DNA of 64,000 nucleotides from Octopus sinensis (Eukaryota): assembly GCF_006345805.1 (NCBI RefSeq), contig NC_043023.1, forward strand, positions 20,646,001-20,710,000, in the 5' to 3' direction. The notes under the pieces were generated by a model. It ran no database searches. It was not told where the DNA came from and worked only from the letters and a program-made list of their open reading frames with translations. The translations under genes were made by a program, and so were the position numbers. Positions 4,969 to 62,777 of this stretch are shown piece after piece (the stretch's first letter is position 1; the number at the start of each line of letters is the position of its first letter).

Positions 4969-5369
4969 GATATACATACATGTATATATATAGATATACA
5001 TACATATATATACTTAAGCACTATGGTTTTTGTGCGTGTCCTCTCTCCTGTTACCTTTGTTAGTGTCTCTCACCCCACCCCCCCAATCACAGTTGCCCTT
5101 GTGAAATGCAAAAACCAGGAATATTTGTCTTTATGGTTGTTGTTAATTCATCATCATCATCGTTTAACGTCCGTTCTCCATGCTAGCATGGGTTGGACGG
5201 TTCAACCGGGGTTCTGGGAAGCCAGAAGGCTGCACCAGGCTCCAGTCCAATCTGGCAATGTTTCTACAGCTGGATGCCCTTCCTAACGCCAATAATTATA
5301 TTAAATTAAACATCTTGGTCTCGTCCTTACTGCTAGAACTTTCGTTATTCTCAGATATGGATTTGTGTG

Positions 5370-17660: not shown

Positions 17661-19859
17661 TTAAATCTGATTTTGTTGTTTTCAAATTAGACTCTGTCGA
17701 ATTGGAAATGTTTATACCTAAGAAGTTTGTTTTCCAGTCCCATGGCTTTGGTTCCAGGCAAATGCATTTTATTTTAGCTGCAGACCAACCTTGTGAGTGG
17801 ATGTCAAAAATGCCCATTGTGTGTGTGTTTGAATATGCAGTGCATTATATGGATTTACAGAACCCTGTGGCGATCACAAAAAGCTCCTCCAGTGGACCTG
17901 GCTATCAGACCATACAGTAATCCAATATGGAAGAGTATAATGTAGAGTTTTATGCAGCTGAAATGTAGGAGATACAATATATGAAGTTATTTTATGAGAG
18001 CATATAGATCTAAAAAACCAGGAGGTATGGTGTGTGTGTGTGTGTGTGTGTTACTGTCTCCTTGTCTAGACCTCACACGGCAGTTGTAAATGAGCATCAT
18101 TGTCAAACAAGTGGTATTATTAATTTCCAATCTTCTGTGAAAACATGTCTGGCCATGGGGGAAATATTCCCCTACATGAAAACCAGTGAAGGTTGGTGAC
18201 AGGAAGGGCATCCAGCTGTTGGAAACTTTCCTTAAATTCTGCCCAACCCATTCCAGCATAGAAAAGAGGACCTTAAAATGGCAGTGATATATTTACATTT
18301 TATAGCTCTGTACACACCCCTAATATTTAGGTTTAAAGACCTAGCAAGAAAAGGTGCATTATACACAAATAAACATGGCATATAAACCAAATGGTTCTGG
18401 GTTCAGTCCCATTGTTTGGCACCTTGGGCAAGTGTCTTCTACTATAGTCTCTGGCCAACCAAAGCCTTGTGAATGGATTTGGTAGGTGGGAACCATAAGA
18501 AGCTCGTCAGTGCCCCCTAACTGGCTCCCATGCCGATGGCACGTAAAAAACACTATCTGAATGCGATTGATTCCAGGGCCACCTGACTGGCTCCTGTACT
18601 GGTGGCACGTAAAAAGCTCCCACTACACTATTGGAGTGGTTGGTGTTAGGAAGAGCATCCAATTGTAGAAACATTGCCTGACCAGATTGGAGCCAGGTGC
18701 AGCTGCTGGCTTTCCAGAAGTCTGTGAAACCGTCCAACCCATGCCAGCATGGAAAATGGACGTTAAACAATGATGATGATGATGTATGCATTTGTGTGTC
18801 TGTGTTTGTCTCCCCCACCATTGCTTGACACTGATGTTGGTGTGTTTACACCCCCGTAACTTAGCAGTTTGGCAAAATAATTACTAGGCTTACAAAGAAT
18901 AAGCCCTGGGGTTGACTTGTTCGACTAAAGGCAGTGCTCCAGCATGACACAGTCAAATGACTGAAACAAGTAAAAGAGTAAATGCACAGTCCTATTTTTA
19001 TACGTGCATGCAAGTGTATCTGTGTGTGTATCATCACCATCCTCACCATCACCACCACCACCACCACCACTACCATCATCATCACCATCTGCATCACCAC
19101 CATCATCATCATCATCGTTTACTGTCCGCTTTCCATGCTGGCAGGGGTTGGACGGTTCAACTGGGGTCTGGGAAGCCAGAAGGCTGCACCAGGCCCAGTC
19201 TGATCTGGCAGTGTTTCTACGGCTGCATGCCCTTCCTAACGCCAACCACTCCGTGAGTGTAGTGGGTGCTTTTTATGTGCCACCGGCACTGGTCTCACAT
19301 CTACATTTTCCATTGTTGATCGATTTTGATTTTGATTCTCACTTGCCTCAAAAGGTTTTCACAAGTAGAGTTTTGTGTCCCAAGAAGGAAAGGTATGCAT
19401 AAGTGGACTGGCTACATCCCAGGTGGAAGCCACGGGTTATGGTCTCACTTGTCCTGCCGGGGTCTTCTCACGCATGTATGTGTGTAAAATATCAAAATAT
19501 CCTTGTGTGTAGTTGAGGAATTGAGGTTGTTTATAGTGAAAACTATTGACATTCAAAGTATGTGCAAACAGAGCTGAGGTCGCAGCCGATTTTCAAAAGA
19601 CAGCTTCACTTTGGTACGGTTGCAGGAGCCATTGTTCCACGCACAAGTGTGTGTTTGTCTTGCCTCTTTCAGACAAAGCATGTTGTACTCGAAGGCCTGG
19701 CCATATAAAAGTGTTTAAGAGAATACTTAGAGAAGACACCAATTGTTATTGTTGTTGTTGTTGTATATAGACCAGCTTAACTGTAAGGATTGAATGTGTG
19801 TGTTTAATCTGTGGTCGTCCTGTGTTTTATTCAGATTTTCTGTGCTCACAGATCCGGGT

Positions 19860-23809: not shown

Positions 23810-24378
23810 GGAAGCACTCCGTCGGTTACGACGACGAGGGTTCCGGTTGAACCGAATCAACGGAACAGCCTGCTCGTGAAATTAACGTGTAAGTGGCTGA
23901 GCACTCCACAGACACGTGTACCCTTAACGTAGTTCCCGGGGATATTCAGCGTGACACAGAGAGTGACAAGGCCGGCCGTTTGAAATACAGGTACAACAGA
24001 AACAGGAAGTAAGAGTGAGAGAAAGTTGTGGTGAAAGAGTACAGCAGGGATCACCACCATCCCCTGCAGGAGCACTCCATCGGTTACGACGATGAGGGTT
24101 CCGGTTGATCCGATCAACGGAACAGCCTGCTCGTGAAATTAACGTGTAAGTGGCTGAGCACTCCACAGACACGTGTACCCTTAACGTAGTTCTCGGGGAT
24201 ATTCAGCGTGACACAGAGAGTGACAAGGCCGGCCCCTTGAAATACAGGTACAACAGAAACAGGAAGTAAGAGTGAGAGAAAGTTGTGGTGAAAGAGTACA
24301 GCAGGGATCACCACCATCCCTGCCGGAGCCTCATGGAGCTTTAGGTGTTTTCACTCAATAAACACTCACAACGCCCGG

Positions 24379-25519: not shown

Positions 25520-26160
25520 TCATCATCATCATCATTTAACGTCCGCTTTCCATGCTAGCATGGGTTGGACGTATGACTGAGGGCTGGCAAACCAGATGGC
25601 TGCACCAGGCTCCAATCTTAATCTGGCAGAGTTTCTACAGCTGGATGCCCTTCCTAACGCCAACCACTCCGAGAGTGTAGTCGGTGCTTTTACGTGCCAC
25701 CGGATCGGGGGCTAGACAGGCGGCACTGTTTTGTTTTGTTTGTTTGTTTGTTTGTTTGTTCCTTCTCGAGCCATGCCTGGCTCATAAGGGCCAGTTTCCC
25801 GGTTTCCTTGGCATATAGGTTCCCCACCTGGATGGGACGCTGGTCCGTCGCAGGCAGCACTGGCAACGGCCTCGCTTGAATCTTTTACACATGCCACCGG
25901 CGTGGGTGCCAGTAAAGTGACGCTGGTAACAATCCTGCACGAATGGTGTCTTTTACGTGCCACCGGCACGGAGGCCAGATAGCCGCTCTGGCAACGATCA
26001 CGCTTGGATGGTGCTCTTAATACCCTACTAGCACGGGGTTCGAGTGCCAATAATGCGACATTGGTAATGATCACGCTCGAATGGTGCCTTTAAGTGCCAC
26101 TGGCACGGAAGCCAGTTAGCCACTCTGTCAATGATCACACTCATATGGTGCTCTTTGCAC
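25520..26160 (-). mobile_element. SINE family C
   Basis: (ATC)n at left, TTTCTACAGCTGGATGCCCTTCC core, GTGCCACCGGC repeats. Confidence 0.8.
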
Positions 26161-27164: not shown

Positions 27165-29194
27165 TAGGGTCATCCCATAATGCGGTTTTTTTTATACTTC
27201 TTTTATTTTTCAAGATTAAGATAATGTTCCTGTTTAATCTGAAATATACTCTCCTTCATTTTCTACAATGCTCTTCCATCTATCTGGTAGCCTTGCAAAG
27301 CCCCCTCTTCCAAAATTCACTTGTCCCCACGATGAAATATACTCCTCCAGTATTGTTCTGACCTCGTCTACAGAATTCATATTTTCCCCGTCCAAATGAT
27401 TTTGAAGACTGCGGAATAAATGATAATCAGATGGGGTAATGTCTGGGGAATATGGTGGGTGAGACATCGTTTCCCATTCAAACTACTCCAGTCTTTGGAA
27501 GCCATCCTTGCAGTATGTGATTGAGCATTATCCTGATGGAAGAACACCTTTTGTCTTGAAACCAAAGTTGGTTGTTTTTCCTCAAGCTACTTGCAGTAGA
27601 TCTCTTTTGTTATTGATTGGTTTGGGTTTAAAAGTTCAAAGTGGACTAAACCTTTCATATCCCACCAAACAGATAACAACACCATATGTGGGTGAAGACC
27701 TTCTTTACCCTGGGATGCTGGTGTTTCTCCTTTCCCCTGCTCACTGTCTTTGGTGCTTGACATTTTTATAGAGAACCCATTTCTTGTCACCAGTCACTGT
27801 TCAGTCCAAAAACAGTTCATTTGTGACATGTGACAGCAAAGAAGAGCACACATTCTCCGAATGCAGTTAGGCTCAGAAAGTTTGAGGAACCAATTTGACT
27901 CAATTTGCTGACTTATCTGATGGCATGCAGGTGTTGATGACTGGTTGAATGACCAAATCCAAGCTTCTCTTCTAGTTCCTCAACAGTAACGTTTGGATTT
28001 TGTTCTACCAGCGTTTGCAGGACATCTTTGTTGAACTCTGCAGATTGTCCAGGACGAGGTTTGTCTTCAAGGCTATAGTTTCCAGCTCAGAATTTCTGGA
28101 ACCACCGTTGACACTGGTTTACGCTTATTGTCCAATCCCATAACACTGAATTAATATTCCTCGCACCTTCTGCTACATTGGTGCCTTTGTTGAACTCATA
28201 ATGCAAAATGTGCTGAATATGTTCCTTTGTCACTTCCATTAACCCTTTAGTATTTAAACCAGCCATATCTGGCCAAAATATTTAATCTGTTTTATGTTCA
28301 AACTAACCAGATCCATGCTCTCACACCTACCCTACAATGTTATTCTACATTAAGTAATTACACCATCAAGATCTTGAAGATATGAGAAAATGCATGATTA
28401 ATTCAAATCAATGGGAATCAATAGGCATTATGTTTGATAGAATAATCTGAACACTAAAGGGTTAAACATGCTAAATATCAGTGTGATCCCACCATGACAT
28501 CCACCACCGCTTTATACTTAACCCTTTAGTATTTAAACCGGCCATATCCGGCCAAAAGTATTCTACCTGTTTTATGTTCAAACTGGCCAGATCCAGGCTC
28601 TCACACCTACCCTACAATGTTATTCTACATTAAGTAATTACACCATCAAGATCTTGAAGATATGAGATAATGCACGATTAATTCAAATCAATGGGAATCA
28701 ATAGGCATTATGTTTGATAGAATAATCTGAACACTAAAAGGTTAAACATGCTAAATATCAGTGTGATCCCACCATGACATCCACCACCGCTTTATACTTA
28801 ACCCTTTAGTATTTAAACCGGCCATATCCGGCCAAAAGTATTCTACCTGTTTTATGTTCAAACTGGCCAGATCCAGGCTCTCACACCTACCCTACAATGT
28901 TATTCTACATTAAGTAATTACACCATCAAGATCTTGAAGATATGAGATAATGCACGATTAATTCAAATCAATGGGAATCAATAGGCATTATGTTTGATAG
29001 AATAATCTGAACACTAAAGGGTGAAAGCTGTTAAAATCAAACTGCACTCTTCAAAACTTGCACTAAGAATAAGTACAAGGTAAAATTACTTCCTGCTTTT
29101 ATAGCAATTTGGATGCAGGTAGTTTATCTCATCCCCTTCCAACTTTCAGTTCATGCAATTGAAAAAAAAACACATTATTTATGGGATGATCCAA
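27165..29194 (-). mobile_element. Degenerate mariner (DD34D) transposon, interrupted by the MITE array
   Basis: TIRs (T)AGGGTCATCCCATAA and TTATGGGATGATCCAA with TA flanks. Frameshifted peptides MEVTKEHIQHIL, VLLSVWWDMKG, FHQDNAQSH, HPPYSPDITPSDYHLFRSLQNHL. Confidence 0.9.
28243..29021 (+). mobile_element. Composite array MITE1-X-MITE1-X-MITE1 (X = 52 bp between TTAA sites)
   Basis: MITEs at 28243-28461, 28522-28741 and 28802-29021. X at 28466-28517 and 28746-28797. TTAA at each internal junction. Confidence 0.92.
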
Positions 29195-29722: not shown

Positions 29723-30090
29723 TGGAGGTGCAATGGCCCAGTGGTTAGGGCAGCGGACTCGCGGTTTCGATTCCCAGACCGGGCGTTGTGAGTGTTTATT
29801 GAGTGAAAACACCTAAAGCTCCACGAGGCTCCGGCAGGGGATGGTGGTGATCCCTGCTGTACTCTTTCACCACAACTTTCTCTCACTCTTACTTCCTGTT
29901 TCTGTTGTACCTGTATTTCAAACGGCCGGCCTTGTCACTCTCTGTGTCACACTGAATATCCCTGAGAACTACGTTAAGGGTACACGTGTCTGTGGAGTGC
30001 TCAGCCACTTACACGTTAATTTCACGAGCAGGCTGTTCCGTTGATCGGATCAACCGGAACCCTCGTCGTCGTAACCGATGGAGTGCTTCC
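29723..30090 (+). mobile_element. SINE family D
   Basis: tRNA-Arg-like head (with a small deletion) and full body. Confidence 0.9.
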
Positions 30091-36132: not shown

Positions 36133-36817
36133 ATCATCATCATCATCGTTTAACGTCCGTTCTCCATGCTAGCATGGGTTGGACTGTTCGACCGGGGATC
36201 TGGGAAGTCAGAAGACTGCACCAGGCTCCGGTCTTATCTGGCAACGTTTCTACAGCTGGATGCCCTTCCTAACGCCAACCACTCTGTGAGTGTAGTGGGT
36301 GCTTTTTACGTGCCACCTGCACTGGTGCCAGGCGAGGCTGGCATCGGCCACGGTCGGATTGGTGCATTTTATGGAAGCCAGTCGAGGCGGCACTGGCTTC
36401 GGCTACGATTTGTATGGTGCTTTTTACGTGCCACAGACAGAGAAGCCAGTCGAGGCGGCGCTGGCATCGGCCACAATTCGGATGGTGCATTTTATGGAAG
36501 CCAGTCGAGGCAGCACTGGCTTCGGCTACGATTCGGATGGTGCTTTTTACGTGCCACCGACACGGAAGCCAGTCGAGGCGGCGCTGGCATCGGCCACAAT
36601 TCGGATAGTGCTTTTTACGTACCTCCAGTCCCAGGGCCCTGGCATCTGCCGGGTGCTAGTCATAGGATTGGTTCAATTTCGATTTCGATTTCACTTGCCC
36701 CAACAGGTCTTCGCAAGCAAGGGGGGTTGCCATAGGTGCCTGTCGTCGGATGAGGTTTGATATCGACTTCGCTTGCCTCAACAGGTCTTTGTGTGTCCAA
36801 GGGGGGAAAGGCATGCA
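36133..36817 (-). mobile_element. Long SINE family C copy with 34-bp TSD, inserted in a MITE1-like element
   Basis: TAATAAATGAGTAATTACTTTGGACCGAGCGATC at 36099-36132 and 36818-36851; (ATC)n tail at left; internal about 55-bp repeats. Confidence 0.9.
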
Positions 36818-36907
36818 TAATAAATGAGTAATTACTTTGGACCGAGCGATCTGAATGCTAAATGGTCAATTGTTTCCTGAATAACATTTCTCTATTCTGT
36901 TTTGTAG

Positions 36908-37084
36908 ATCGTTGAAGAGGAGACCGGTTATGACTATGTCTGTAAAGAGAGAAGGTGGTCGAAAGTGGCCTGTAGACTTGGGCTACCCACTGGAAAAGGA
37001 TTAGGATCCATAATTAAGGCTCACTATGACCGCATACTCTACCCATTTTGGCTTTTTAAAAATGACCAGCCCTTTTCACACAAG
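36908..37084 (+). CDS. KDM5: KDM5 exon E3 (ARID): IVEEETGYDYVCKERRWSKVACRLGLPTGKGLGSIIKAHYDRILYPFWLFKNDQPFSHK
   Basis: TTGTAG|ATC...AAG|GTAAGT. Matches KDM5A KEKKWSKVGSRLG...GKGTGSLLKSHYERILYPY. Confidence 0.95.
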
Positions 37085-38419: not shown

Positions 38420-40810
38420 CATGTCTCTTATGCTCATACGGTTGCCCTTTCACCATATATATTACTCTACCAGGACGTTTGGTTATTCGTCCTTGTTTCC
38501 CATATTTGTACATTTAAAAAAATACTGTGTCCCCTATATTGAAATAGTTTGTATTGTTAGGGTTAGGGTTCTTCTGTATTAGTTGTTTCTCTCCTGGTAA
38601 CAATTTATCAAATACTGATCGTATCTTTCTGGCGAACATTAATTCAGTGGGTGACATACCCAACTCTCTGTTGGGGTTTGGTGTTATTCTGTAGACGTGT
38701 AAAAATTTTGTCAGTGTATTATCCACTAATGATTTGTTTCTGGTTTTCCTCAACACACTTTCAAATGTATCTACGAACCTCTCCACAAGTCCATTTGACT
38801 TGATAATCGTGGGGTAGTGACATGTTCCATTTGATGCGTCTTACAAAAATCTTTGCACTCTTTTGCTGTAAATTGCGTGCCATTATCTGACATTATAGTG
38901 TTCGTCACGCCAAAATGTGCAAATATTTCATCCCAAAATTCAGTAGTTGTTACCAATCAAACGTGGCCAATGCCAGTGCCACTTTGACTGGCTTCTGTGC
39001 TGGTGACACATACAAAGCACCAACAGATTGTTGTTGATGCCAACTCTTCTGGCCCCTGTGCTGGTGGCACGTAAAATGCACCCACTACACTCTCGGCGTG
39101 GTTGGCATTAGGAAGAGCATCCAGCTGTAGAAACACTACCAGATCAGATTGGGGCCTGGTGCAGCCTCCTGGCTTCTCAGTCCCCAGTTGAACCATCCAA
39201 CATGTGCTAGCATGGAAAATGGGCGTTAAACCGATGATGATGATTTTTGTAGTTGTTTGTTTACACTTACAGATTTCAGGCCATTTTGTGTAGTTATCTA
39301 CCACTACCAGATAATATACACCATTTCGTGGTCCTGCAAAATCTATGTGTAGTCTAGAGCAGGCTATATCTGTCTTTGACCACTGTTGAATCTTTACTGG
39401 AGGTACCTTAGCTGTCAGGGTGCATCCCCTGGATGCTTTCACCAGATTCTCAATACCTTCATCCATAGTAGGCCAGTAAACATAACTCTTCATGATGTCC
39501 TTCATTCTTACAATTCCATCAAATTCTTTCAGCATCTTATTTTGTCGTTCAACAGGTATCCCAACCCTCTGAACGCACATCAACACATTGTCACACGTTG
39601 AATAGAATTTCAAACCTGTGTTACACTCAGCGCCATAGTTTTATGTGCTTACTCCGGTGGCACGTAAAAAGCACCCACCAGAATTGATATATTCCTGAAC
39701 AATATAAAAAAAAAAATATACACATAAACCACAAAAACAGTTGGGATATCATTTTAGGGCAAAAAAAATTTTCAATAATAAAATTATTAAATCATAATTA
39801 GCGCCGCTGGCCGATGCCAGCGCCGTCTCGACTGGCTTCCGTGTCGGTGGCACGTAAAAAGCACCATCCGAATCGTGGCCGAAGCCAGTGCCACCTCGAC
39901 TGGCTTCCGTGCAGGTGGCACGTAAAATGCACCAATCCGACCGTGGCCAATGCCAGCCTCGCCTGGCACCAGTGCAGGTGGCACGTAAAAAGCACCCACT
40001 ACACTCTCGGAGTGGTTGGCGTTAGGAAGGGCATCCAGCTGTAGAAACTCTGCCAGATCAGACTGGAGCCTGGTGCAGCCATCTGGCTTCCCAGATCCCC
40101 GGTCGAACCGTCCAACCCATGCTAGCATGGAGAGCGGACGTTAAACGATGATGATGATTAGTATTTTTTTCATTTAATAAATGCATTCTTTCTGCTTTCC
40201 TTTTTCTCTCTTCCCATGTGACTGGTAGTAACCGCACTACATTGCAGAGAGTATTTTTTAAATTCAATTTCTGATTTTAACGCTGCTATTACTAAATCTT
40301 CTAACGGTTCCTTATACTTCGGGATCAATCTCGACAGCCTGTCTGCGTGTCCCAATTTCTTCAAGGGCAAAAATTCCATTTTGAAAACATAATTTAGTAG
40401 GGTAGTCTCCCCCAGCATTGTAGTCGATTGGCTGTATGTGTAGGGGACACCTGTTTTTGATCCATATATTGTTAATAGCGGACGGTGTCTGCAAAGTAGA
40501 CTTTCTGCTGTGCAAGAATTTATGAAATTTTTTCACTGCAAAGATAATGGCCAATGCCTCTTTTTCTAGCTGTAATCTTTTTTTTTTTTGCTGATAGTAA
40601 TGCATGTGACACATATGTGATCGGTTTTACGTTACTATTTTCCAACTTATCTAAGATTACTGCTCTGATCCCAGGCTCGCTAGCATCTGATGCTTCAGTT
40701 ATTTTTAGTTTCGGATCAAAATGTGTTTGAGATAGCTCTGATGTCAACATCTTTTTAATCTCTTTGAATGCTTTTTGGCATTCGTCAGTCCAACACCATT
40801 TCATGTAAAA
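38420..40810 (-). mobile_element. Ty3/Gypsy pol remnant (RNase H + integrase), disrupted by SINE C insertions
   Basis: LEKEALAIIFAVKKFHKFL, HADRLSRL, GIVRMKDIMKSYVYWP, RLHIDFAGP...LVVVDNYTKWPE, IMSDNGTQF, SPTELMFARKIR; frameshifted. Confidence 0.9.
39679..39999 (-). other. Inverted ectopic copy of 53944-54269 (SINE C part + KDM5 intron end + 18 nt of exon E10)
   Basis: Reverse complement reads ...CCCTAAAATGATATCCCAACTG...ATATTGTTCAG|GAATATATCAATTCTGGT, about 98% identical to the E10 acceptor region. Confidence 0.92.
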
Positions 40811-42120: not shown

Positions 42121-42344
42121 ATACACACATCTGTTGGGACAACAAGGACCATTTGGTCATCTTAAAGGATGACCCCTGACTTGCATAGTGACTCTGCTTA
42201 TAGCTGGGCTGTGGAGTCAAAACAAAAAAACTTCACTTCGACTCTGACTCCTCTACTATTGGCACCTCTGACTCTGATGTAATTAAGTGACTATGGAGAG
42301 TGAGAGAGAGGTACGAGAAAGAGGACAGAAACGTATATAAAAGC

Positions 42345-42995
42345 ACCATCCGAACGTGGCCGATGCCAGCACCGCCCCGAACGTGGCCGATGCCAGCACC
42401 GCCCCGACTGGCTTCTGTGCCGGTGGCACATAAAAAGCACCATCCGAACGTGGCCGATGCCAGCACCGCCCCGACTGGCTTCTGTGCCGGTGGCACATAA
42501 AAAGCACCATCCGAACGTGGCTGATGCCAGCCCCGCCCCGACTGGCTCCTGTGCCGGTGGCACATAAAAAGCACCATCCGAACGTGGCCGATGCCAGCAC
42601 CGCCCCGACTGGCTTCTGTGCCGGTGGCACATAAAAAGCACCATCCGAACGTGGTCGATGCCAGCTCCGCCCCGACTGGCTCCTGTGCCGGTGGCACATA
42701 AAAAGACCATCCGAACGTTGCCAGCGCCGGCTTGGCTGGCTTCCGTGCCACTGGCACGTTAAAAGCTCCAACCGATCGTGACCGATGCCGGACCCCCCCC
42801 CCTGGCACCTGTGCAGGTGGCACGTAAAAAGTACCCACTACACTCGCGGAGTGGTTGGCGTTAGGAAGGGTATCCAGCCGTAGAAACTCTGCCAGATCAG
42901 ACTGGAGCCTGGAGCAGCCCCTGGCTTCCCAGACCCCAGTTGCACCGTCCAACCCGTGCTAGCATGGAGAAGGGACGTTAAACGATGATGATGTA
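42345..42995 (+). mobile_element. SINE family C with expanded about 55-bp internal minisatellite (about 7 units)
   Basis: AAAAGCACCATCCGAACGTGGCCGATGCCAGCACCGCCCCGACTGGCTTCTGTGCCGGTGGCACAT repeated; (GAT)n tail. Confidence 0.9.
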
Positions 42996-44819: not shown

Positions 44820-44907
44820 ACACACACACACACACACACTTTTTCTCTCTCTCTCTTTCTCCTCTCTCTCTCACACTCTCCTCTCTCTTTCTCTCTCACA
44901 CTCTCCT

Positions 44908-44943
<36 letters not shown>

Positions 44944-45140
44944 CTCTCTCTCTCACACTCTCTTCTCTCTCTCTTTCCTTCTCTCTCCTCTCTCTCTCCT
45001 CTCTCTATTTCTCTCTCTCTCTTTTTCTCTCTCTCTTTTTCTCTCTCTCACACTCCTCTCTATTTCTCTCTCTCTCCCTTTTTCTCTCACACTCCTCTCT
45101 ATTTCTCTCCTCTCTCTCTCACACTCTCCTTCTCTCTCTC
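44820..45140 (+). repeat. (CT)n-rich polypyrimidine tract
   Basis: About 320 nt, ending about 40 nt before the E6 acceptor. Confidence 0.95.
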
Positions 45141-47045: not shown

Positions 47046-47897
47046 GTAATAACAGTGTAGCACAAAACAGCGGTGCATCAGCATGGCCGCAGCTCTGAGC
47101 TGAAACTAGAGCGAAAAAATATATTTTTTTTTCATTTTTCATTTTTCCAGTTTCAGCTAATGAGCTGTGGCCATGCTGGGGCACCGCCATATATAACTTA
47201 TAAACAAGGGCAAATGTCCTTGTTTATAAATTTAACCTTTAAAGATATTTTTTTTAATATGCTGGCCATTGATAAAATTTTTTTCGAAAAGCTTTATCCT
47301 ATATTGGTTGGCGTTAGGAAGGGCATCCAGCTGTAGAAACATTGCCAGATTAGACTGGAGCCTGGTGCAGCCTTCTGGCTTCCCAGAACCCCGGTCGAAC
47401 CGTCCAACCCATGCTAGCATGGAGAACGGACGTTAAACGACGATGATGATGATGATGATGTGTGTGTGTGTGTGTCTATGTTTGTTCTCCCACCATCGCT
47501 TGACACCAATGTTGGTGTGTTTACATTCCCGTAACTTAACATTTCAACAAAAGAGACCGATAGAATACGTATTAGGCTTGCGAAGTCCTGGAGGTTGATT
47601 TGTTTGACGGGGGCGGGGGGTGGGGGGCTTGCTCCAGCATGGCCGCAGTCGTATGACTGAAACAGGTTAAAGAATAACAGAAGGGTGTACATAGTGATTA
47701 TACTAGAATTCATTCTGTTAAAAAAAAAGGGGGTGTAGATGGGAATATTCCAAGCACCTCAGCCTTGATCCCTCATGCATTTTGCTGGGCCCCACCCATG
47801 CTGGGCCTTGCTTTCAGCCTTGTTTAGATCAGATTTAATGACAGCAATTTCCCCCATTTACAAAAGCATTAACCGCGTCTAATTATGCTGCTTGCAG

Positions 47898-48432: not shown

Positions 48433-49567
48433 ATTTACATGTTTTTTCAACCCACCCACCTCTTGTCCCCTCTATTTTGTCATTAATGCTATTATTATTA
48501 TTGTAACATATAGAAATTAAGGAGCCAATCTGGCAGAAACGTTAGCACTCTGGGCGAAATGCGTAGCCGTATTTCGTCTGCTGTTATGTTCTGAGTTCAA
48601 ATAGGGTGGCGAGCTGGCAGAAACGTTAGCACGCCGGGCAAAATGCTTGGCGGTATTTCGTTTGTCGGTACGTCTAAGTTCAAATTCCGCTGAGGTTGAC
48701 TTTGCCTTTCATTCTTTCGGGGTCAACAAATTAAGTACAGTTGTGTACTGAGGTCAATGTAATTGACTGACCCCCCCCCTTCCCCAAATTTTGAGCCTTA
48801 TGCCTAGAGTAGAAAAGAATATTTATCTAGATGAAAGGCCACGAGCTGGCAGAAATGTTAGCACGCCGGGAGAAATGCTTAGTGGTATTTCGTCTGCCGC
48901 TACGTTCTAAGTTCAAATTCCACTGAGGTGGACTTTGCCTTTCATCCTTTCGAGGTCAATAAATTAAGTACCAGTTACGCACTGGGGGCGATGTAATCGA
49001 CTTTATCCCTTTGTCTGTCCATGTTTGTCCCCTCTGTGTTTAGCCCCTTATGGGTAGTAAAGAAATAGGTATTTCATCTGCCTTTACGTCCTGAGTTCAA
49101 ATTCTGCCGAGGTCGACTTTGCCTTTCATCCTTTCGAGGTCAACAAATTAAGTACAGTTGTGTACTGAGGTCAATGTAATTGACTGACCCCCCCCCTTCC
49201 CCAAATTTTGAGCCTTATGCCTAGAGTAGAAAAGAATATTTATCTAGACGAAAGGCGGCGAGCTGGCTGAAATGTCAGCACGCCGGACGAAATGCTTAGT
49301 GGTATTTCGTCTCTCTTTATGTTCCGAGTTCAAATTCCACTGAGGTTGACTTTACCTTTCATCCTTTCGAGGTTCATAAATTAAGTACCAGTTGCATACT
49401 GGAGTCGATCTAATCGACTGGCCCCTCCACCCCCAAATTTCGGGCTTTGTGCCTAAAGTAGAAAAGAATATACAGATATGGAAACATTTTAGTCTCAGAC
49501 CCAGAATAATAAATCTGAATAGCATAAATAGAATAGAACATCCTTATATTGCAGAAAAATTTGTTCG

Positions 49568-49641
49568 TGGCCAGCCATGAGACTTGAACTCACATCCCTG
49601 TGATTACCAGTCATAGTGCTTTACCTTTAAGCTCAACTGCC
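49568..49641 (-). pseudogene. tRNA-like cloverleaf (anticodon loop CT-GGT-AA, Thr-like), probably a pseudogene or SINE head
   Basis: D stem GCTT/AAGC; anticodon stem with 1 mismatch; T arm GTGAG-TTCAAGT-CTCAT; imperfect acceptor stem; G at position 8. Confidence 0.55.
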
Positions 49642-50100
49642 CACTGACAAATTCTTCTGCAATTCTTGAACGTATAAATTTAGCTTTTATAGATGCTATA
49701 TGTGAAATTCCGTTATATGTAAACAAAGTTTTTTTTTTTTTTTTTGGAGGTGTTGAAATATATAAGAATGGAAATATTGCATTCTCAGATGCAGAATAAT
49801 AATTCTGAAAAAAGCCCAAATAGGATACAACATCCTTATAAAATTATTATTGCGTTGTCAAAACTAAAACCATTCCGTCCCTCCATGGCATTTTTGAGGG
49901 CTTCTGTTTGTAACTTGTCATACAAGGGAGTCGATTGATATACGTCGTTCTGGGTCATCCCACATGACAATTCCCATGACATGGGATCGAAAAAGGGATT
50001 CATTTATTCACCTCTCTACTCCACCCCTGTTTTCCTTTTGCTCTTGTAAAATTCATCTACCCCCATCATGTGTTCAATCTCTTGCTTCTGTTCTGTTCAG

Positions 50101-52179: not shown

Positions 52180-52519
52180 TTAAGTATAAAGCGGTGGTGG
52201 ATGTCATGGTGGGATCACACTGATATTTAGCATGTTTAACCCTTTAGTGTTCAGATTATTCTATCAAACATAATGCCTATTGATTCCCATTGATTTGAAT
52301 TAATCGTGCATTATCTCATATCTTCAAGATCTTGATGGTGTAATTACTTAATGTAGAATAACATTGTAGGGTAGGTGTGAGAGCCTGGATCTGGCCAGCT
52401 TGAACATAAAACAGGTAGAATACTTTTGGCCGGATATGGCCGGTTTAAATACTAAAGGGTTAAGTATAAAGCAGTGGTGGATGTCATGGTGGGATCACAC
52501 TGATATTTAGCATGTTTAA
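52180..52519 (-). mobile_element. X-MITE1-X composite (reverse complement of the 28.2-29.0 kb unit)
   Basis: TTAA-X(52184-52235)-TTAA-MITE(52240-52459)-TTAA-X(52464-52515)-TTAA. Confidence 0.92.
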
Positions 52520-53780: not shown

Positions 53781-54143
53781 CATCATCATCATCATCGTTT
53801 AACGTCCGTTCCCCATGCTAGCATGGGTTGGACGGTTCGACCAGGGATCTGGGAAGCCAGAAGGCTGCACCAGGCTCCAGTCTTATCTGGCAATGTTTCT
53901 ACAGCTGGATGCTCTTCCTAACGCCAACCACTCCGTGAGTGTAGTGGGTGCTTTTTACGTGCCACCTGCACTGGTGCCAGGCGAGGCTGGCATTGGCCAC
54001 GGTCGGATTGGTGCATTTTACGTGCCACCGGCACGGAAGCCAGTCGAGGCGGCACTGGCTTCAGCCACGATTCGGATGGTGCTTTTTACGTGCCACCGAC
54101 ACGGAAGCCAGTCGAGACGGCGCTGGCATCGGCCAGTGGCGCT
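53781..54143 (-). mobile_element. SINE family C
   Basis: (ATC)n at left, family C core and internal repeats. Confidence 0.9.
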
Positions 54144-54251
54144 AATTATGATTTAATAATTTTATTATTGAAAATTTTTTTTGCCCTAAAATGATATCCC
54201 AACTGTTTTTGTGGTTTATGTGTATATATTTTTTTTTTTTATATTGTTCAG

Positions 54252-54344
54252 GAATATATCAATTCTGGTTGGAATTTGAACAATTTGCCAGTCTTGGAAA
54301 AGTCCGTACTTTGCCATATAAACGCAGACATTTCTGGAATGAAG
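54252..54344 (+). CDS. KDM5: KDM5 exon E10: [31 protein letters not shown]
   Basis: GTTCAG|GAA...AAG|GTAAGG. Matches KDM5A [31 protein letters not shown]. Confidence 0.97.
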
Positions 54345-57439: not shown

Positions 57440-57602
57440 GGGTGAACCGAAGACCTGGTACGGTGTTCCTGGTGAAGCAGCAGAATTCTTTGAAGATTCA
57501 ATGCGTAAATCAGCCCCTGAACTTTTTGAACAATCTCCAGATCTCCTACATCAGCTGACTACCATAATGAACCCTAACATTCTCATGTCTATGGGCGTAC
57601 CG
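57440..57602 (+). CDS. KDM5: KDM5 exon E12 (JmjC): [54 protein letters not shown]
   Basis: CTACAG|G...CCG|GTAAGT; includes the 2-oxoglutarate-binding K of GEPKTW. Confidence 0.97.
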
Positions 57603-58699
57603 GTAAGTAGTGCTGTGAAGGGGGTTGTCATTAGGGTGGATGGGCTGGAGGCAGGGCTGTGTGCGGTCCAGTGGTTAGGGTGTTGCACTTGCAATCACAA
57701 GATCATGGTTTCAATTTCCAGACCAACTGCGTGTTGTGTTCTTGAGCAAGGCACTTCACTTTATGTTCCTGTATTCCATTCACTGGTACGCTGTGATGGA
57801 CTGGCATTCTGTTCACAGGAACTGTTGGCCTGCCTACAAACCTAACTGACGGGTTGATGGCATTTGGAAGCCATGACAATGCAAGGAAGCACGTTGTGAC
57901 TAGTGGTCATCATCCTCCTCATTTAATGTCCTCTTTCCATGCTGGCATGGGTGGGACGGTTTCACAGAAGCCTGCACCAGGCTTCTGTGGCTGCTTTGGC
58001 AAGGTTTTTACAGCTGGATGCCCTTCCTAACACCAACCACTTTACAGTGTGGACTGAATACTTCTTGCGTGGCGCCTGTACTGACAGGGTCACCAAGTAC
58101 CTTGCAAGACAAAAAAACCCTCTTTTGAGAGGCAAGGGGTAATTGGAAGAGGGGGTTAAAAAAAAACATTTGATATGGAATATCTTCTACTATAGCTTCT
58201 GGCTGACCAAAGCCTTGTGAGTGGATTTGGGAGTCGGAAACTGAAAGAAGCGTGTCTGTGTTTGTTCCCCACCACTGCTTGACAATCAGTATTGGTTTGT
58301 TTATGTCCCTGTAACTTAGTGGTTCGGCCAAAGGGAAAGACAGAATTGAATAATTAAATACTGGGGTTGATTAAAAAATGAAAAAAATAAATGTGCCCTT
58401 TTAAAGCCTAGCCAGGCTCATGGGCCCGGTTTCCCGGTTTCTATGGTGTATGTGTTTCCCAGCTGGACGGGACTCCAGTCCATCACAGCATTACTCATTT
58501 TTGCCAGCTGAGTGGACTGGAGCAACGTGAAATGAAGTGTTTTGCTCAAGAACACAACGCGTCGCCCGGTCCAGGATTTGAAACCACAATCTTACAATCA
58601 TGGTGCTGGCACCCTAACCACTGGGCCATGTGCCTCCACCTGGGATTGATTAGTTCACCTAAAATTCCTCAAGGCTGTGGTGCCCCAGTATGGCTGTAG

Positions 58700-62500: not shown

Positions 62501-62695
62501 TTGCCAATTGGCCGTGTTTGTATCGATTACTATCGTAAACTACAGCGACAGTGTGTGTTTTCACACGAAGAGTTGATCTGTAAGATGGCCGCAGACCCAG
62601 ACAGCCTGGACTTCCACTTGGCCGCTGCCACACACAAAGACATGTTGGTGATGGTCGACGATGAGAAGAAACTTCGTAAACGGCTGTTGGATATG
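62501..62695 (+). CDS. KDM5: KDM5 exon E14: [65 protein letters not shown]
   Basis: TTTCAG|TTG...ATG|GTAAGT. Matches KDM5[34 protein letters not shown]. The gene continues beyond the window. Confidence 0.97.
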
Positions 62696-62777
62696 GTAAG
62701 TGGGGGTCGGAAGAGGAGGAAGGTGATGGTTGACAGTCCCTGGGACAAGCAACTTTGGTTGGTAATGGGTGGTAATA

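Follow-up and report, generated by a model that had tools for sequence, protein, structure and literature searches.

The window analysed here, a 64-kb stretch (64,000 nt) of Octopus sinensis DNA, carries on its + strand part of a gene for a KDM5 (JARID1) histone demethylase, assigned to this family because the joined exons match the Pfam domains ARID, PHD, JmjC and KDM5_C-hel. Comparisons with KDM5 relatives by tblastn placed exons at ~26.9, 29.3, 36.9, 41.4, 43.4, 47.9 and 50.1 kb and, further 3', at ~52.0, 54.25, 56.2, 57.4, 58.8 and 62.5 kb; exon E3 corresponds to ~36890-37084. Among database proteins, the nearest match is a fragment from Octopus vulgaris (P0046), 99% identical with one differing residue in the aligned part; in all, two residues set it apart from the window's KDM5, NIFMSM in place of NILMSM and VDNEKK in place of VDDEKK (exons 57441-57605 and 62501-62734). 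A protein search that used upstream KDM5 exons found no gene model of the locus from any cephalopod, and exact-protein look-ups of P0046 and of two open reading frames of the window in a contig index gave no locus. Exon E10, which the initial annotation had given as 93 nt and in frame, has clean borders at both ends (acceptor ttgttcag/GAA, donor AAG/gtaagg) and encodes 31 residues, in agreement with that description. Its first 18 nt, which are the part found copied elsewhere, encode conserved KDM5 residues. The preceding exons E7, E8 and E9 (159, 120 and 156 nt) are each in phase 0. The intron between the 43.4-kb and 47.9-kb exons contains a CT-rich, (CT)n-like low-complexity tract (44845-45120).

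The SINE-like repeat family and its surroundings

The introns harbour a family of short repeats with at least 15 copies in 64 kb, all of which keep a (GAT)n end. Several copies are 5'-truncated, each at another point, and the upstream part of the copies is a variable array of 67-nt units, within which the start points vary. Truncated copies of a length similar to that of the element considered below, also with the (GAT)n end, lie at 25522-25701, 19105-19293, 47305-47450 and 5150-5292. The retained (GAT)n tails and the varied 5' truncation indicate LINE-dependent retroposition, with (GAT)n as the 3' end. The elements are short, multi-copy and non-autonomous, with a simple-repeat tail and 5' truncation, as expected of SINEs; SINEs in the strict sense also have a Pol III promoter head (derived from tRNA, 5S or 7SL), and since neither ARAGORN nor Rfam detected a tRNA-like head in any family copy in the window, "SINE-like" is the safer label. 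In O. vulgaris SINEs make up 11.6% of the genome and are mostly unclassified (PMC13282606). One family copy (42310-42776) contains at least 5-6 tandem 67-nt units with 91-98% mutual identity, compared with three in the donor element described below; the number of units is variable in the family. A tRNA-Thr-like sequence was found on the minus strand at 49567-49642 (ARAGORN; Rfam tRNA, 34 bits). It is surrounded by members of another repeat family, which is very abundant (45.4-46.4, 48.5-49.5 and 50.3-50.7 kb), and instead of being a genuine tRNA gene it may represent a tRNA-derived head belonging to that family.

The E3-E4 intron also contains decayed LTR-retrotransposon pol remnants on the minus strand (38957-39613 and 40170-40614), with weak matches, just under the Pfam cut-offs, to an integrase zinc-binding domain and an RNase H-like domain. 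They are broken up by two SINE-like copies (38959-39244 and 39656-40158). The integrase remnant ends 43 nt from the junction with the second of these, and a protein search with it returned only a 66%-identical paralogue from O. bimaculoides. When the flanks were joined to restore the surrounding pol reading frame, the pol gene proved to be heavily decayed.

An inverted copy of the E10 acceptor

The second of these SINE-like copies contains the end of the intron before E10 and the start of the exon in inverted orientation (Table 1). Local alignment matched 39674-40158 to the reverse complement of 53785-54272 over 488 columns, with 13 substitutions and one 3-nt gap; the block 39674/39677-40158 as a whole is 96.5% identical to the 53.8-kb locus over 485 nt. 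This pair is the longest inverted repeat of the 64-kb window, far above chance. The alignment reproduced what the initial annotation had reported for 39677-39999, namely that it is the reverse complement of 53944-54269 with four substitutions and a small indel. The substitutions are at 39806, 39880, 39893 and 39913; the indel, of 3 nt, sits in an A-run/TA repeat near 39716 and is of the slippage type. All four substitutions fall in the repeat head and none in the 121 nt of copied exon and intron; the 321 inserted nucleotides are 98.8% identical to 53944-54269. The 23-nt direct repeat said to bound this section is indeed exact, and the same 23-mer, GGTGGCACGTAAAAAGCACCCAC, occurs in the donor on the minus strand (53944-53966). 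The adjoining tail, described earlier as about 94% identical to the 53.8-kb copy, differs from 53785-53943 by 9 substitutions in 159 nt (94.3%).

Table 1. Positions in the window of the inverted copy, its donor locus and a nearer family member
Feature	Position	Strand	Evidence
5' stub of the resident 5'-truncated SINE-like element; left 23-nt direct repeat	39656..39678	+	exact 23-mer
Inverted copy of the first 18 nt of E10	39677..39694	+	exact match to the reverse complement of 54252-54269
Inverted copy of the intron end preceding E10 (106 nt in the donor)	39695..39797	+	0 substitutions; found in the window only here and at the donor
Head of the donor SINE-like element as copied (built of 67-nt units)	39798..39976	+	4 substitutions in 179 nt vs the reverse complement of 53967-54145
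Right 23-nt direct repeat, probably donor-derived, in register with the resident tail	39977..39999	+	exact 23-mer
Resident element tail, ending in (GAT)4, apparently not donor-derived	40000..40158	+	94.3% identity to the donor tail; subfamily-site differences
Donor SINE-like element, E9-E10 intron	53785..54145	-	tail 53785-53943, 23-mer 53944-53966, head 53967-54145
3' end of the intron before E10, unique source sequence	54146..54251	+	splice border; no further window copy
KDM5 exon E10	54252..54344	+	93 nt, phase 0; splice borders, translation, tblastn to KDM5 relatives, Pfam
Nearer inverted family member, predicted pairing competitor of the 39.7-kb arm	36136..36626	-	236 nt at 95%; 370 bp, net -431 kcal/mol

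The copied intron end comprises the branch region, the polypyrimidine tract and the AG, and measures 103 nt in the copy as a result of the slippage indel; the earlier reading of this piece as an inverted E10 3' splice site with 18 exon nucleotides is correct, and the 106-nt intron end is included in it. For the 124 nt at 54146-54269, the inverted copy is the sole other occurrence in the window. The possibility that these 124 nt belong to the repeat itself was rejected, as they have no other window copy and 18 of them encode conserved KDM5 residues. Because the donor contains part of a conserved KDM5 coding exon, the exon locus is the source of the inserted sequence.

Composition of the 39.7-kb element

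Comparison with the other family members shows that the 39.7-kb structure is a mosaic, best read as a resident 182-nt 5'-truncated element with a 321-nt insertion templated by an inverted member 14 kb downstream. The head is 98% identical to the donor, the next best family copy reaching 88%. The tail, with its 94.3% identity to the donor, is 95.2% identical to 47305-47450, 94.4% to 5150-5292 and 93.1% to 36136-36294; since two unrelated window copies match it equally well or better, its similarity to the donor is ordinary family background. The contrast between the two parts (4 differences in 323 nt vs 9 in 159 nt; Fisher p = 0.012) is significant only at about the 0.01 level. Of the nine differences in the tail, seven are at positions that vary in other family members too, and these are subfamily markers because both states are present in those members; five of the differences are transversions. 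In the head, three of the four differences are CpG transitions. The 3' half of the resident tail (~40083-40130) carries the marker GATCCCC, common to the donor subfamily, so that the independence of the tail rests mainly on 40007-40081, where six of the differences are clustered, and on 40134. When the changes were polarized by the other family copies, the donor was found to have changed at 54063 and the insert at 39893, which means that both copies have mutated since the event and that the copy is real and aged.

In all 10 other window copies, the 23-mer is followed by a tail beginning with TACACTC, and at 39656-39678 alone does it run into the inverted exon copy. The left edge of the 23-nt repeat is the truncation point of the resident element, where it meets unrelated flanking sequence, and the right edge is the point at which the identity changes, i.e., the breakpoint; element sequence runs in register across 39999/40000. 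The left junction exhibits a 2-nt microhomology, AC at 39677-39678 (4/5 matches over CC[C/A]AC), and reads GCACCCAC/CAGAATTG, compared with TTCCAAC/CAGAATTG in the donor. There is no clear target-site duplication at 39655/40159, and family members in the window rarely show obvious ones. From this arrangement, we infer that the 182-nt copy was in place before the insertion. Two metagenome scans, covering the flank/element junction and the novel junction, gave no match.

Proposed origin by break repair

The mosaic structure, the in-register right junction, the left microhomology and the direction of copying can be read directly from the sequence, and the insertion has the properties that characterize templated insertions: a donor match with a clear direction, one junction in in-register homology and the other at microhomology. 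We propose, with a probability of about 0.62, that the insertion is young, that it was templated during the repair of a DNA break and that it is of neutral or near-neutral function. The head/tail contrast in identity, the subfamily-site differences, the repeat ending at the identity switch and the AC microhomology make the origin from a break in a resident SINE-like element, already suggested in the initial annotation, well supported, while for the break itself and the repair pathway the sequence is an indirect guide from which we infer the following course of events. The starting point would have been a 182-nt 5'-truncated element (GGTGGCACG...(GAT)n) on the + strand of the E3-E4 intron, inside the old LTR-retrotransposon remnant. 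A break 23 nt into this element would have left a right-hand end, consisting of the element tail, that could invade the inverted copy of the family lying 14 kb further downstream within the gene, over ~159 nt of roughly 94% homology. Synthesis would then have run through the donor 23-mer and the head into 106 nt of unique intron and 18 nt of E10 (321 nt in total), and the extended end, once released, would have been joined to the left break end at the 2-nt AC microhomology. The pathway would be one-sided invasion, or SDSA, finished by end joining. The duplication of the 23-mer and the switch of identity at its end would both follow from the tail-side polarity of the invasion, and the opposite polarity would not carry synthesis toward the head and past it.

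Proximity is known to favour the choice of donor at the DNA level in ectopic break repair. The donor is just 14 kb off despite the abundance of SINEs (11.6% of the O. vulgaris genome, PMC13282606), which argues for a DNA-level choice. The one-sided invasion model goes back to Belmaaza and Chartrand 1994, as cited in PMC4888836. The combination of an in-register homology junction with a microhomology junction, the unchanged donor and the faithful copy are shared with SDSA or one-sided invasion completed by (theta-mediated) end joining. In a documented SDSA case, the synthesized stretch was likewise duplicated when the extended end was end-joined instead of annealed (PMC8654963). However, the template in that reporter is the sister chromatid and in the octopus a diverged, inverted, non-allelic repeat 14 kb off; the octopus product is an inverted dispersed copy of unique sequence instead of a tandem duplication; and the event took place in the germline, being fixed or segregating, and not in a reporter assay.

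The pairwise divergence of the copied block is ~1.25%, or ~0.3% without CpG sites. On a scale on which a JC distance of 0.065 between O. vulgaris repeats corresponds to ~18 My (PMC13282606), the insertion may be, very roughly, 0.5-2 My old, and at that age it could be species-specific or even polymorphic.

Alternative origins

The main rival to DNA-level repair is copying templated by RNA, which we consider possible but unlikely. In a cis version, the left break end (...CCCAC-3') would prime on the nascent KDM5 pre-mRNA at GGUUGG (E10 nt 16-21), a LINE reverse transcriptase would copy the exon start, the intron and the antisense SINE-like element, and the cDNA would anneal to the resident tail; in the version raised in the initial annotation, the templates would be switched among SINE RNAs during target-primed reverse transcription. 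The product would be the same as observed, with an equal 2-nt (4/5) microhomology, and the tethering of the transcript at the locus would explain the proximity of the donor in the cis version. LINEs that were active recently are present in octopus genomes (PMC13282606, PMC9115989), and LINEs have been documented to insert at breaks independently of their endonuclease in human cells (PMC1920257). An RNA template would, however, require additional steps, or else an activity for which there is less documentation in animals. The switching version needs 2-3 template jumps, including an internal landing after which just 23 nt are copied, and leaves the choice of a donor at 14 kb unexplained. The copied region bears no RNA-specific signature and would be unspliced under either model, CpG decay in the donor accounts better for its lone A/G difference on the sense strand (54063), and the tRNA-like head sought in the family with ARAGORN and Rfam was not detected. 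Replicative template switching (FoSTeS/MMBIR), in which a stalled nascent strand would move to the inverted element, copy 321 nt and switch back, predicts the same junctions, one switch taking place in homology and the other at microhomology. In yeast, switches of template from one diverged repeat to another have been documented (PMC4215184), and MMBIR-linked templated insertions have been described (PMC8421209); on this sequence, which carries no extra junctions or deletions, such a process is not separable from break repair, and we regard it as improbable.

The high overall identity of the block (96.5% over 485 nt) and the donor-subfamily marker in the 3' half of the tail would also be compatible with a 5' transduction, 39677-40158 being one retrotransposed copy of the 53.8-kb locus, the tail of which later received a gene-conversion patch. 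As in 5' or 3' transduction by retrotransposons, unique flanking sequence has been carried along with a retroelement. In the octopus, however, the tail is apparently not donor-derived, and the insertion lies in register inside a pre-existing copy with an extra 23-nt stub. The transduction would leave that stub at the 5' end unexplained and would need an additional conversion to account for the six clustered differences at 40007-40081; moreover, the divergence from the donor is not uniform over the whole unit, as the contrast between tail and head indicates, and no target-site duplication was found. Taken together, these points make a transduction very improbable. An assembly artefact (a chimeric read or a misjoin), put forward earlier as a way in which the insertion claim could fail, is not borne out: nothing specific speaks for it, apart from the ease with which repeats are misassembled. 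The copy and its source are separated by four substitutions and an indel with a spectrum of CpG decay, and the junctions are clean and in register. We therefore rejected this extremely unlikely explanation, since each copy has mutations of its own (54063 in the donor, 39893 in the insert).

The mechanism we favour, break repair with copying from a nearby inverted element, is a known outcome; the instance is new and lies in an unusually suggestive position. It would be a clean case from nature in which repair involving two inverted repeats close to each other copied beyond the repeat into unique functional sequence, here a splice acceptor and an exon start that now also occur in antisense in their own transcript. 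Were events of this kind frequent in the repeat-rich genes of cephalopods, they could be a ready source of long intramolecular RNA duplexes, i.e., of substrates for ADAR editing and back-splicing, while the single locus is mainly an illustration of a known mutational mechanism.

Predicted RNA pairing and its possible effects

In the sense pre-mRNA, the two arms are predicted to form 474 bp with a net energy of ~ -631 kcal/mol, compared with -237 for the reconstructed pre-insertion allele, and the duplex prediction pairs 121 of the 124 nucleotides of the splice site and exon start. The arms lie in the E3-E4 and E9-E10 introns, 13.6 kb apart, and flank the exons at ~41.4, 43.4, 47.9, 50.1 and 52.0 kb; a sixth exon (a linker) between them was not found in the window by tblastn with KDM5 relatives. 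From the upstream arm to the E4 acceptor there are 1188 nt; the downstream arm lies 1675 nt past the E9 donor and abuts E10. Within one transcript, the complementary arms thus sit in the introns on either side of a set of internal exons, a geometry known to favour back-splicing or loop-out skipping (PMC13019027, PMC11263572). The initial annotation had proposed that the duplex would promote skipping of E10, back-splicing from E9 to E4 or ADAR editing at the exon start. Its complementarity and geometry hold, and the effects are geometrically possible, with skipping of E10 remaining in frame, but they stand as possibilities that are weakened by the existence of nearer pairing partners. Six exon adenosines are paired, and their editing would recode E, Y, I and N residues of a conserved motif (E>G, Y>C, I>V, N>D and N>S are predicted for 54253, 54256, 54258, 54261 and 54262, respectively).

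The insertion is most likely neutral or near-neutral. Some intronic ADAR hyper-editing, some E4-E9 back-splicing and some skipping of E10 may occur, but these effects are probably small, if there are any, because of the 13.6-kb separation, the exons between the arms and the strong competing pairings nearby. Splicing is co-transcriptional, and the upstream intron may already be gone by the time the downstream arm is transcribed. A strong partner for the 39.7-kb arm lies only 3 kb away, at 36.1-36.6 kb (Table 1), and the tail of the donor has a nearer one at 47.3 kb (154 bp predicted); both arms thus have nearer partners, which are transcribed earlier. The pairing is also crossed, as had been noted before, by a 333-bp pairing between repeats at 28 and 52 kb. 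The unique 121-nt piece (-153 kcal/mol) is the only part without a rival partner. The insertion has in addition lengthened the complementarity between 36136-36626 (minus strand) and 39798-40158, a pair that brackets E3, and may affect E3 more than E10.

Pairs of inverted intronic Alu elements that give rise to circular RNAs or loop-out skipping have in common with the octopus locus the complementary arms in flanking introns of one pre-mRNA (PMC13019027, PMC11263572). Enrichment of such Alu pairs is seen within 0.5-5 kb of a single exon (PMC13019027), whereas 13.6 kb and five or six exons separate the octopus arms; furthermore, one of them runs through an acceptor into an exon, which transposon pairs do not. 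The editing-site complementary sequences (ECSs) of ADAR substrates resemble the insert in being intronic perfect complements of exon bases that include adenosines. Known ECSs are usually near the edited exon and conserved, whereas the octopus copy is 14 kb off, ~1% diverged and recognized by its complementarity. We think it very unlikely that the event created, in one step, a long-range regulatory duplex of KDM5, a newborn ECS and acceptor mask leading to recoding of the first residues encoded by a conserved catalytic-core exon (E>G, Y>C, I>V and N>D/S), regulated skipping of E10 or an E4-E9 circular RNA. If true, this would be a live example of cephalopod editing substrates born by templated repair between intragenic repeats.

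Other young inverted pairs

A second near-perfect inverted pair in the KDM5 gene links 28239-29039 to 52180-52519 (340 nt at 99.1%). The former consists of ~3 tandem repeats of a ~280-nt unit, other members of whose family in the window are 75-83% identical, and this array (28-29 kb) ends ~280 nt before E2; the latter begins 70 nt past the E9 donor. A further young pair in inverted orientation, 23813-24332 and 29779-30090, is 97-98% identical and comes from another repeat family, with a background identity of 80-86%; 23813-24332 is a tandem duplicate of ~258 nt, and the pair, together with the array at 28-29 kb, brackets E2. Self-comparison of the window (at least 96% identity over at least 120 nt) identified five young non-tandem pairs (24/30, 28/52, 39.7/53.9, 5.1/47.3 and 47.3/53.8 kb), of which all five are inverted and none direct, a small sample with a binomial probability of ~0.03. 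The all-inverted pattern may reflect the loss of direct repeats or conversion between inverted neighbours.
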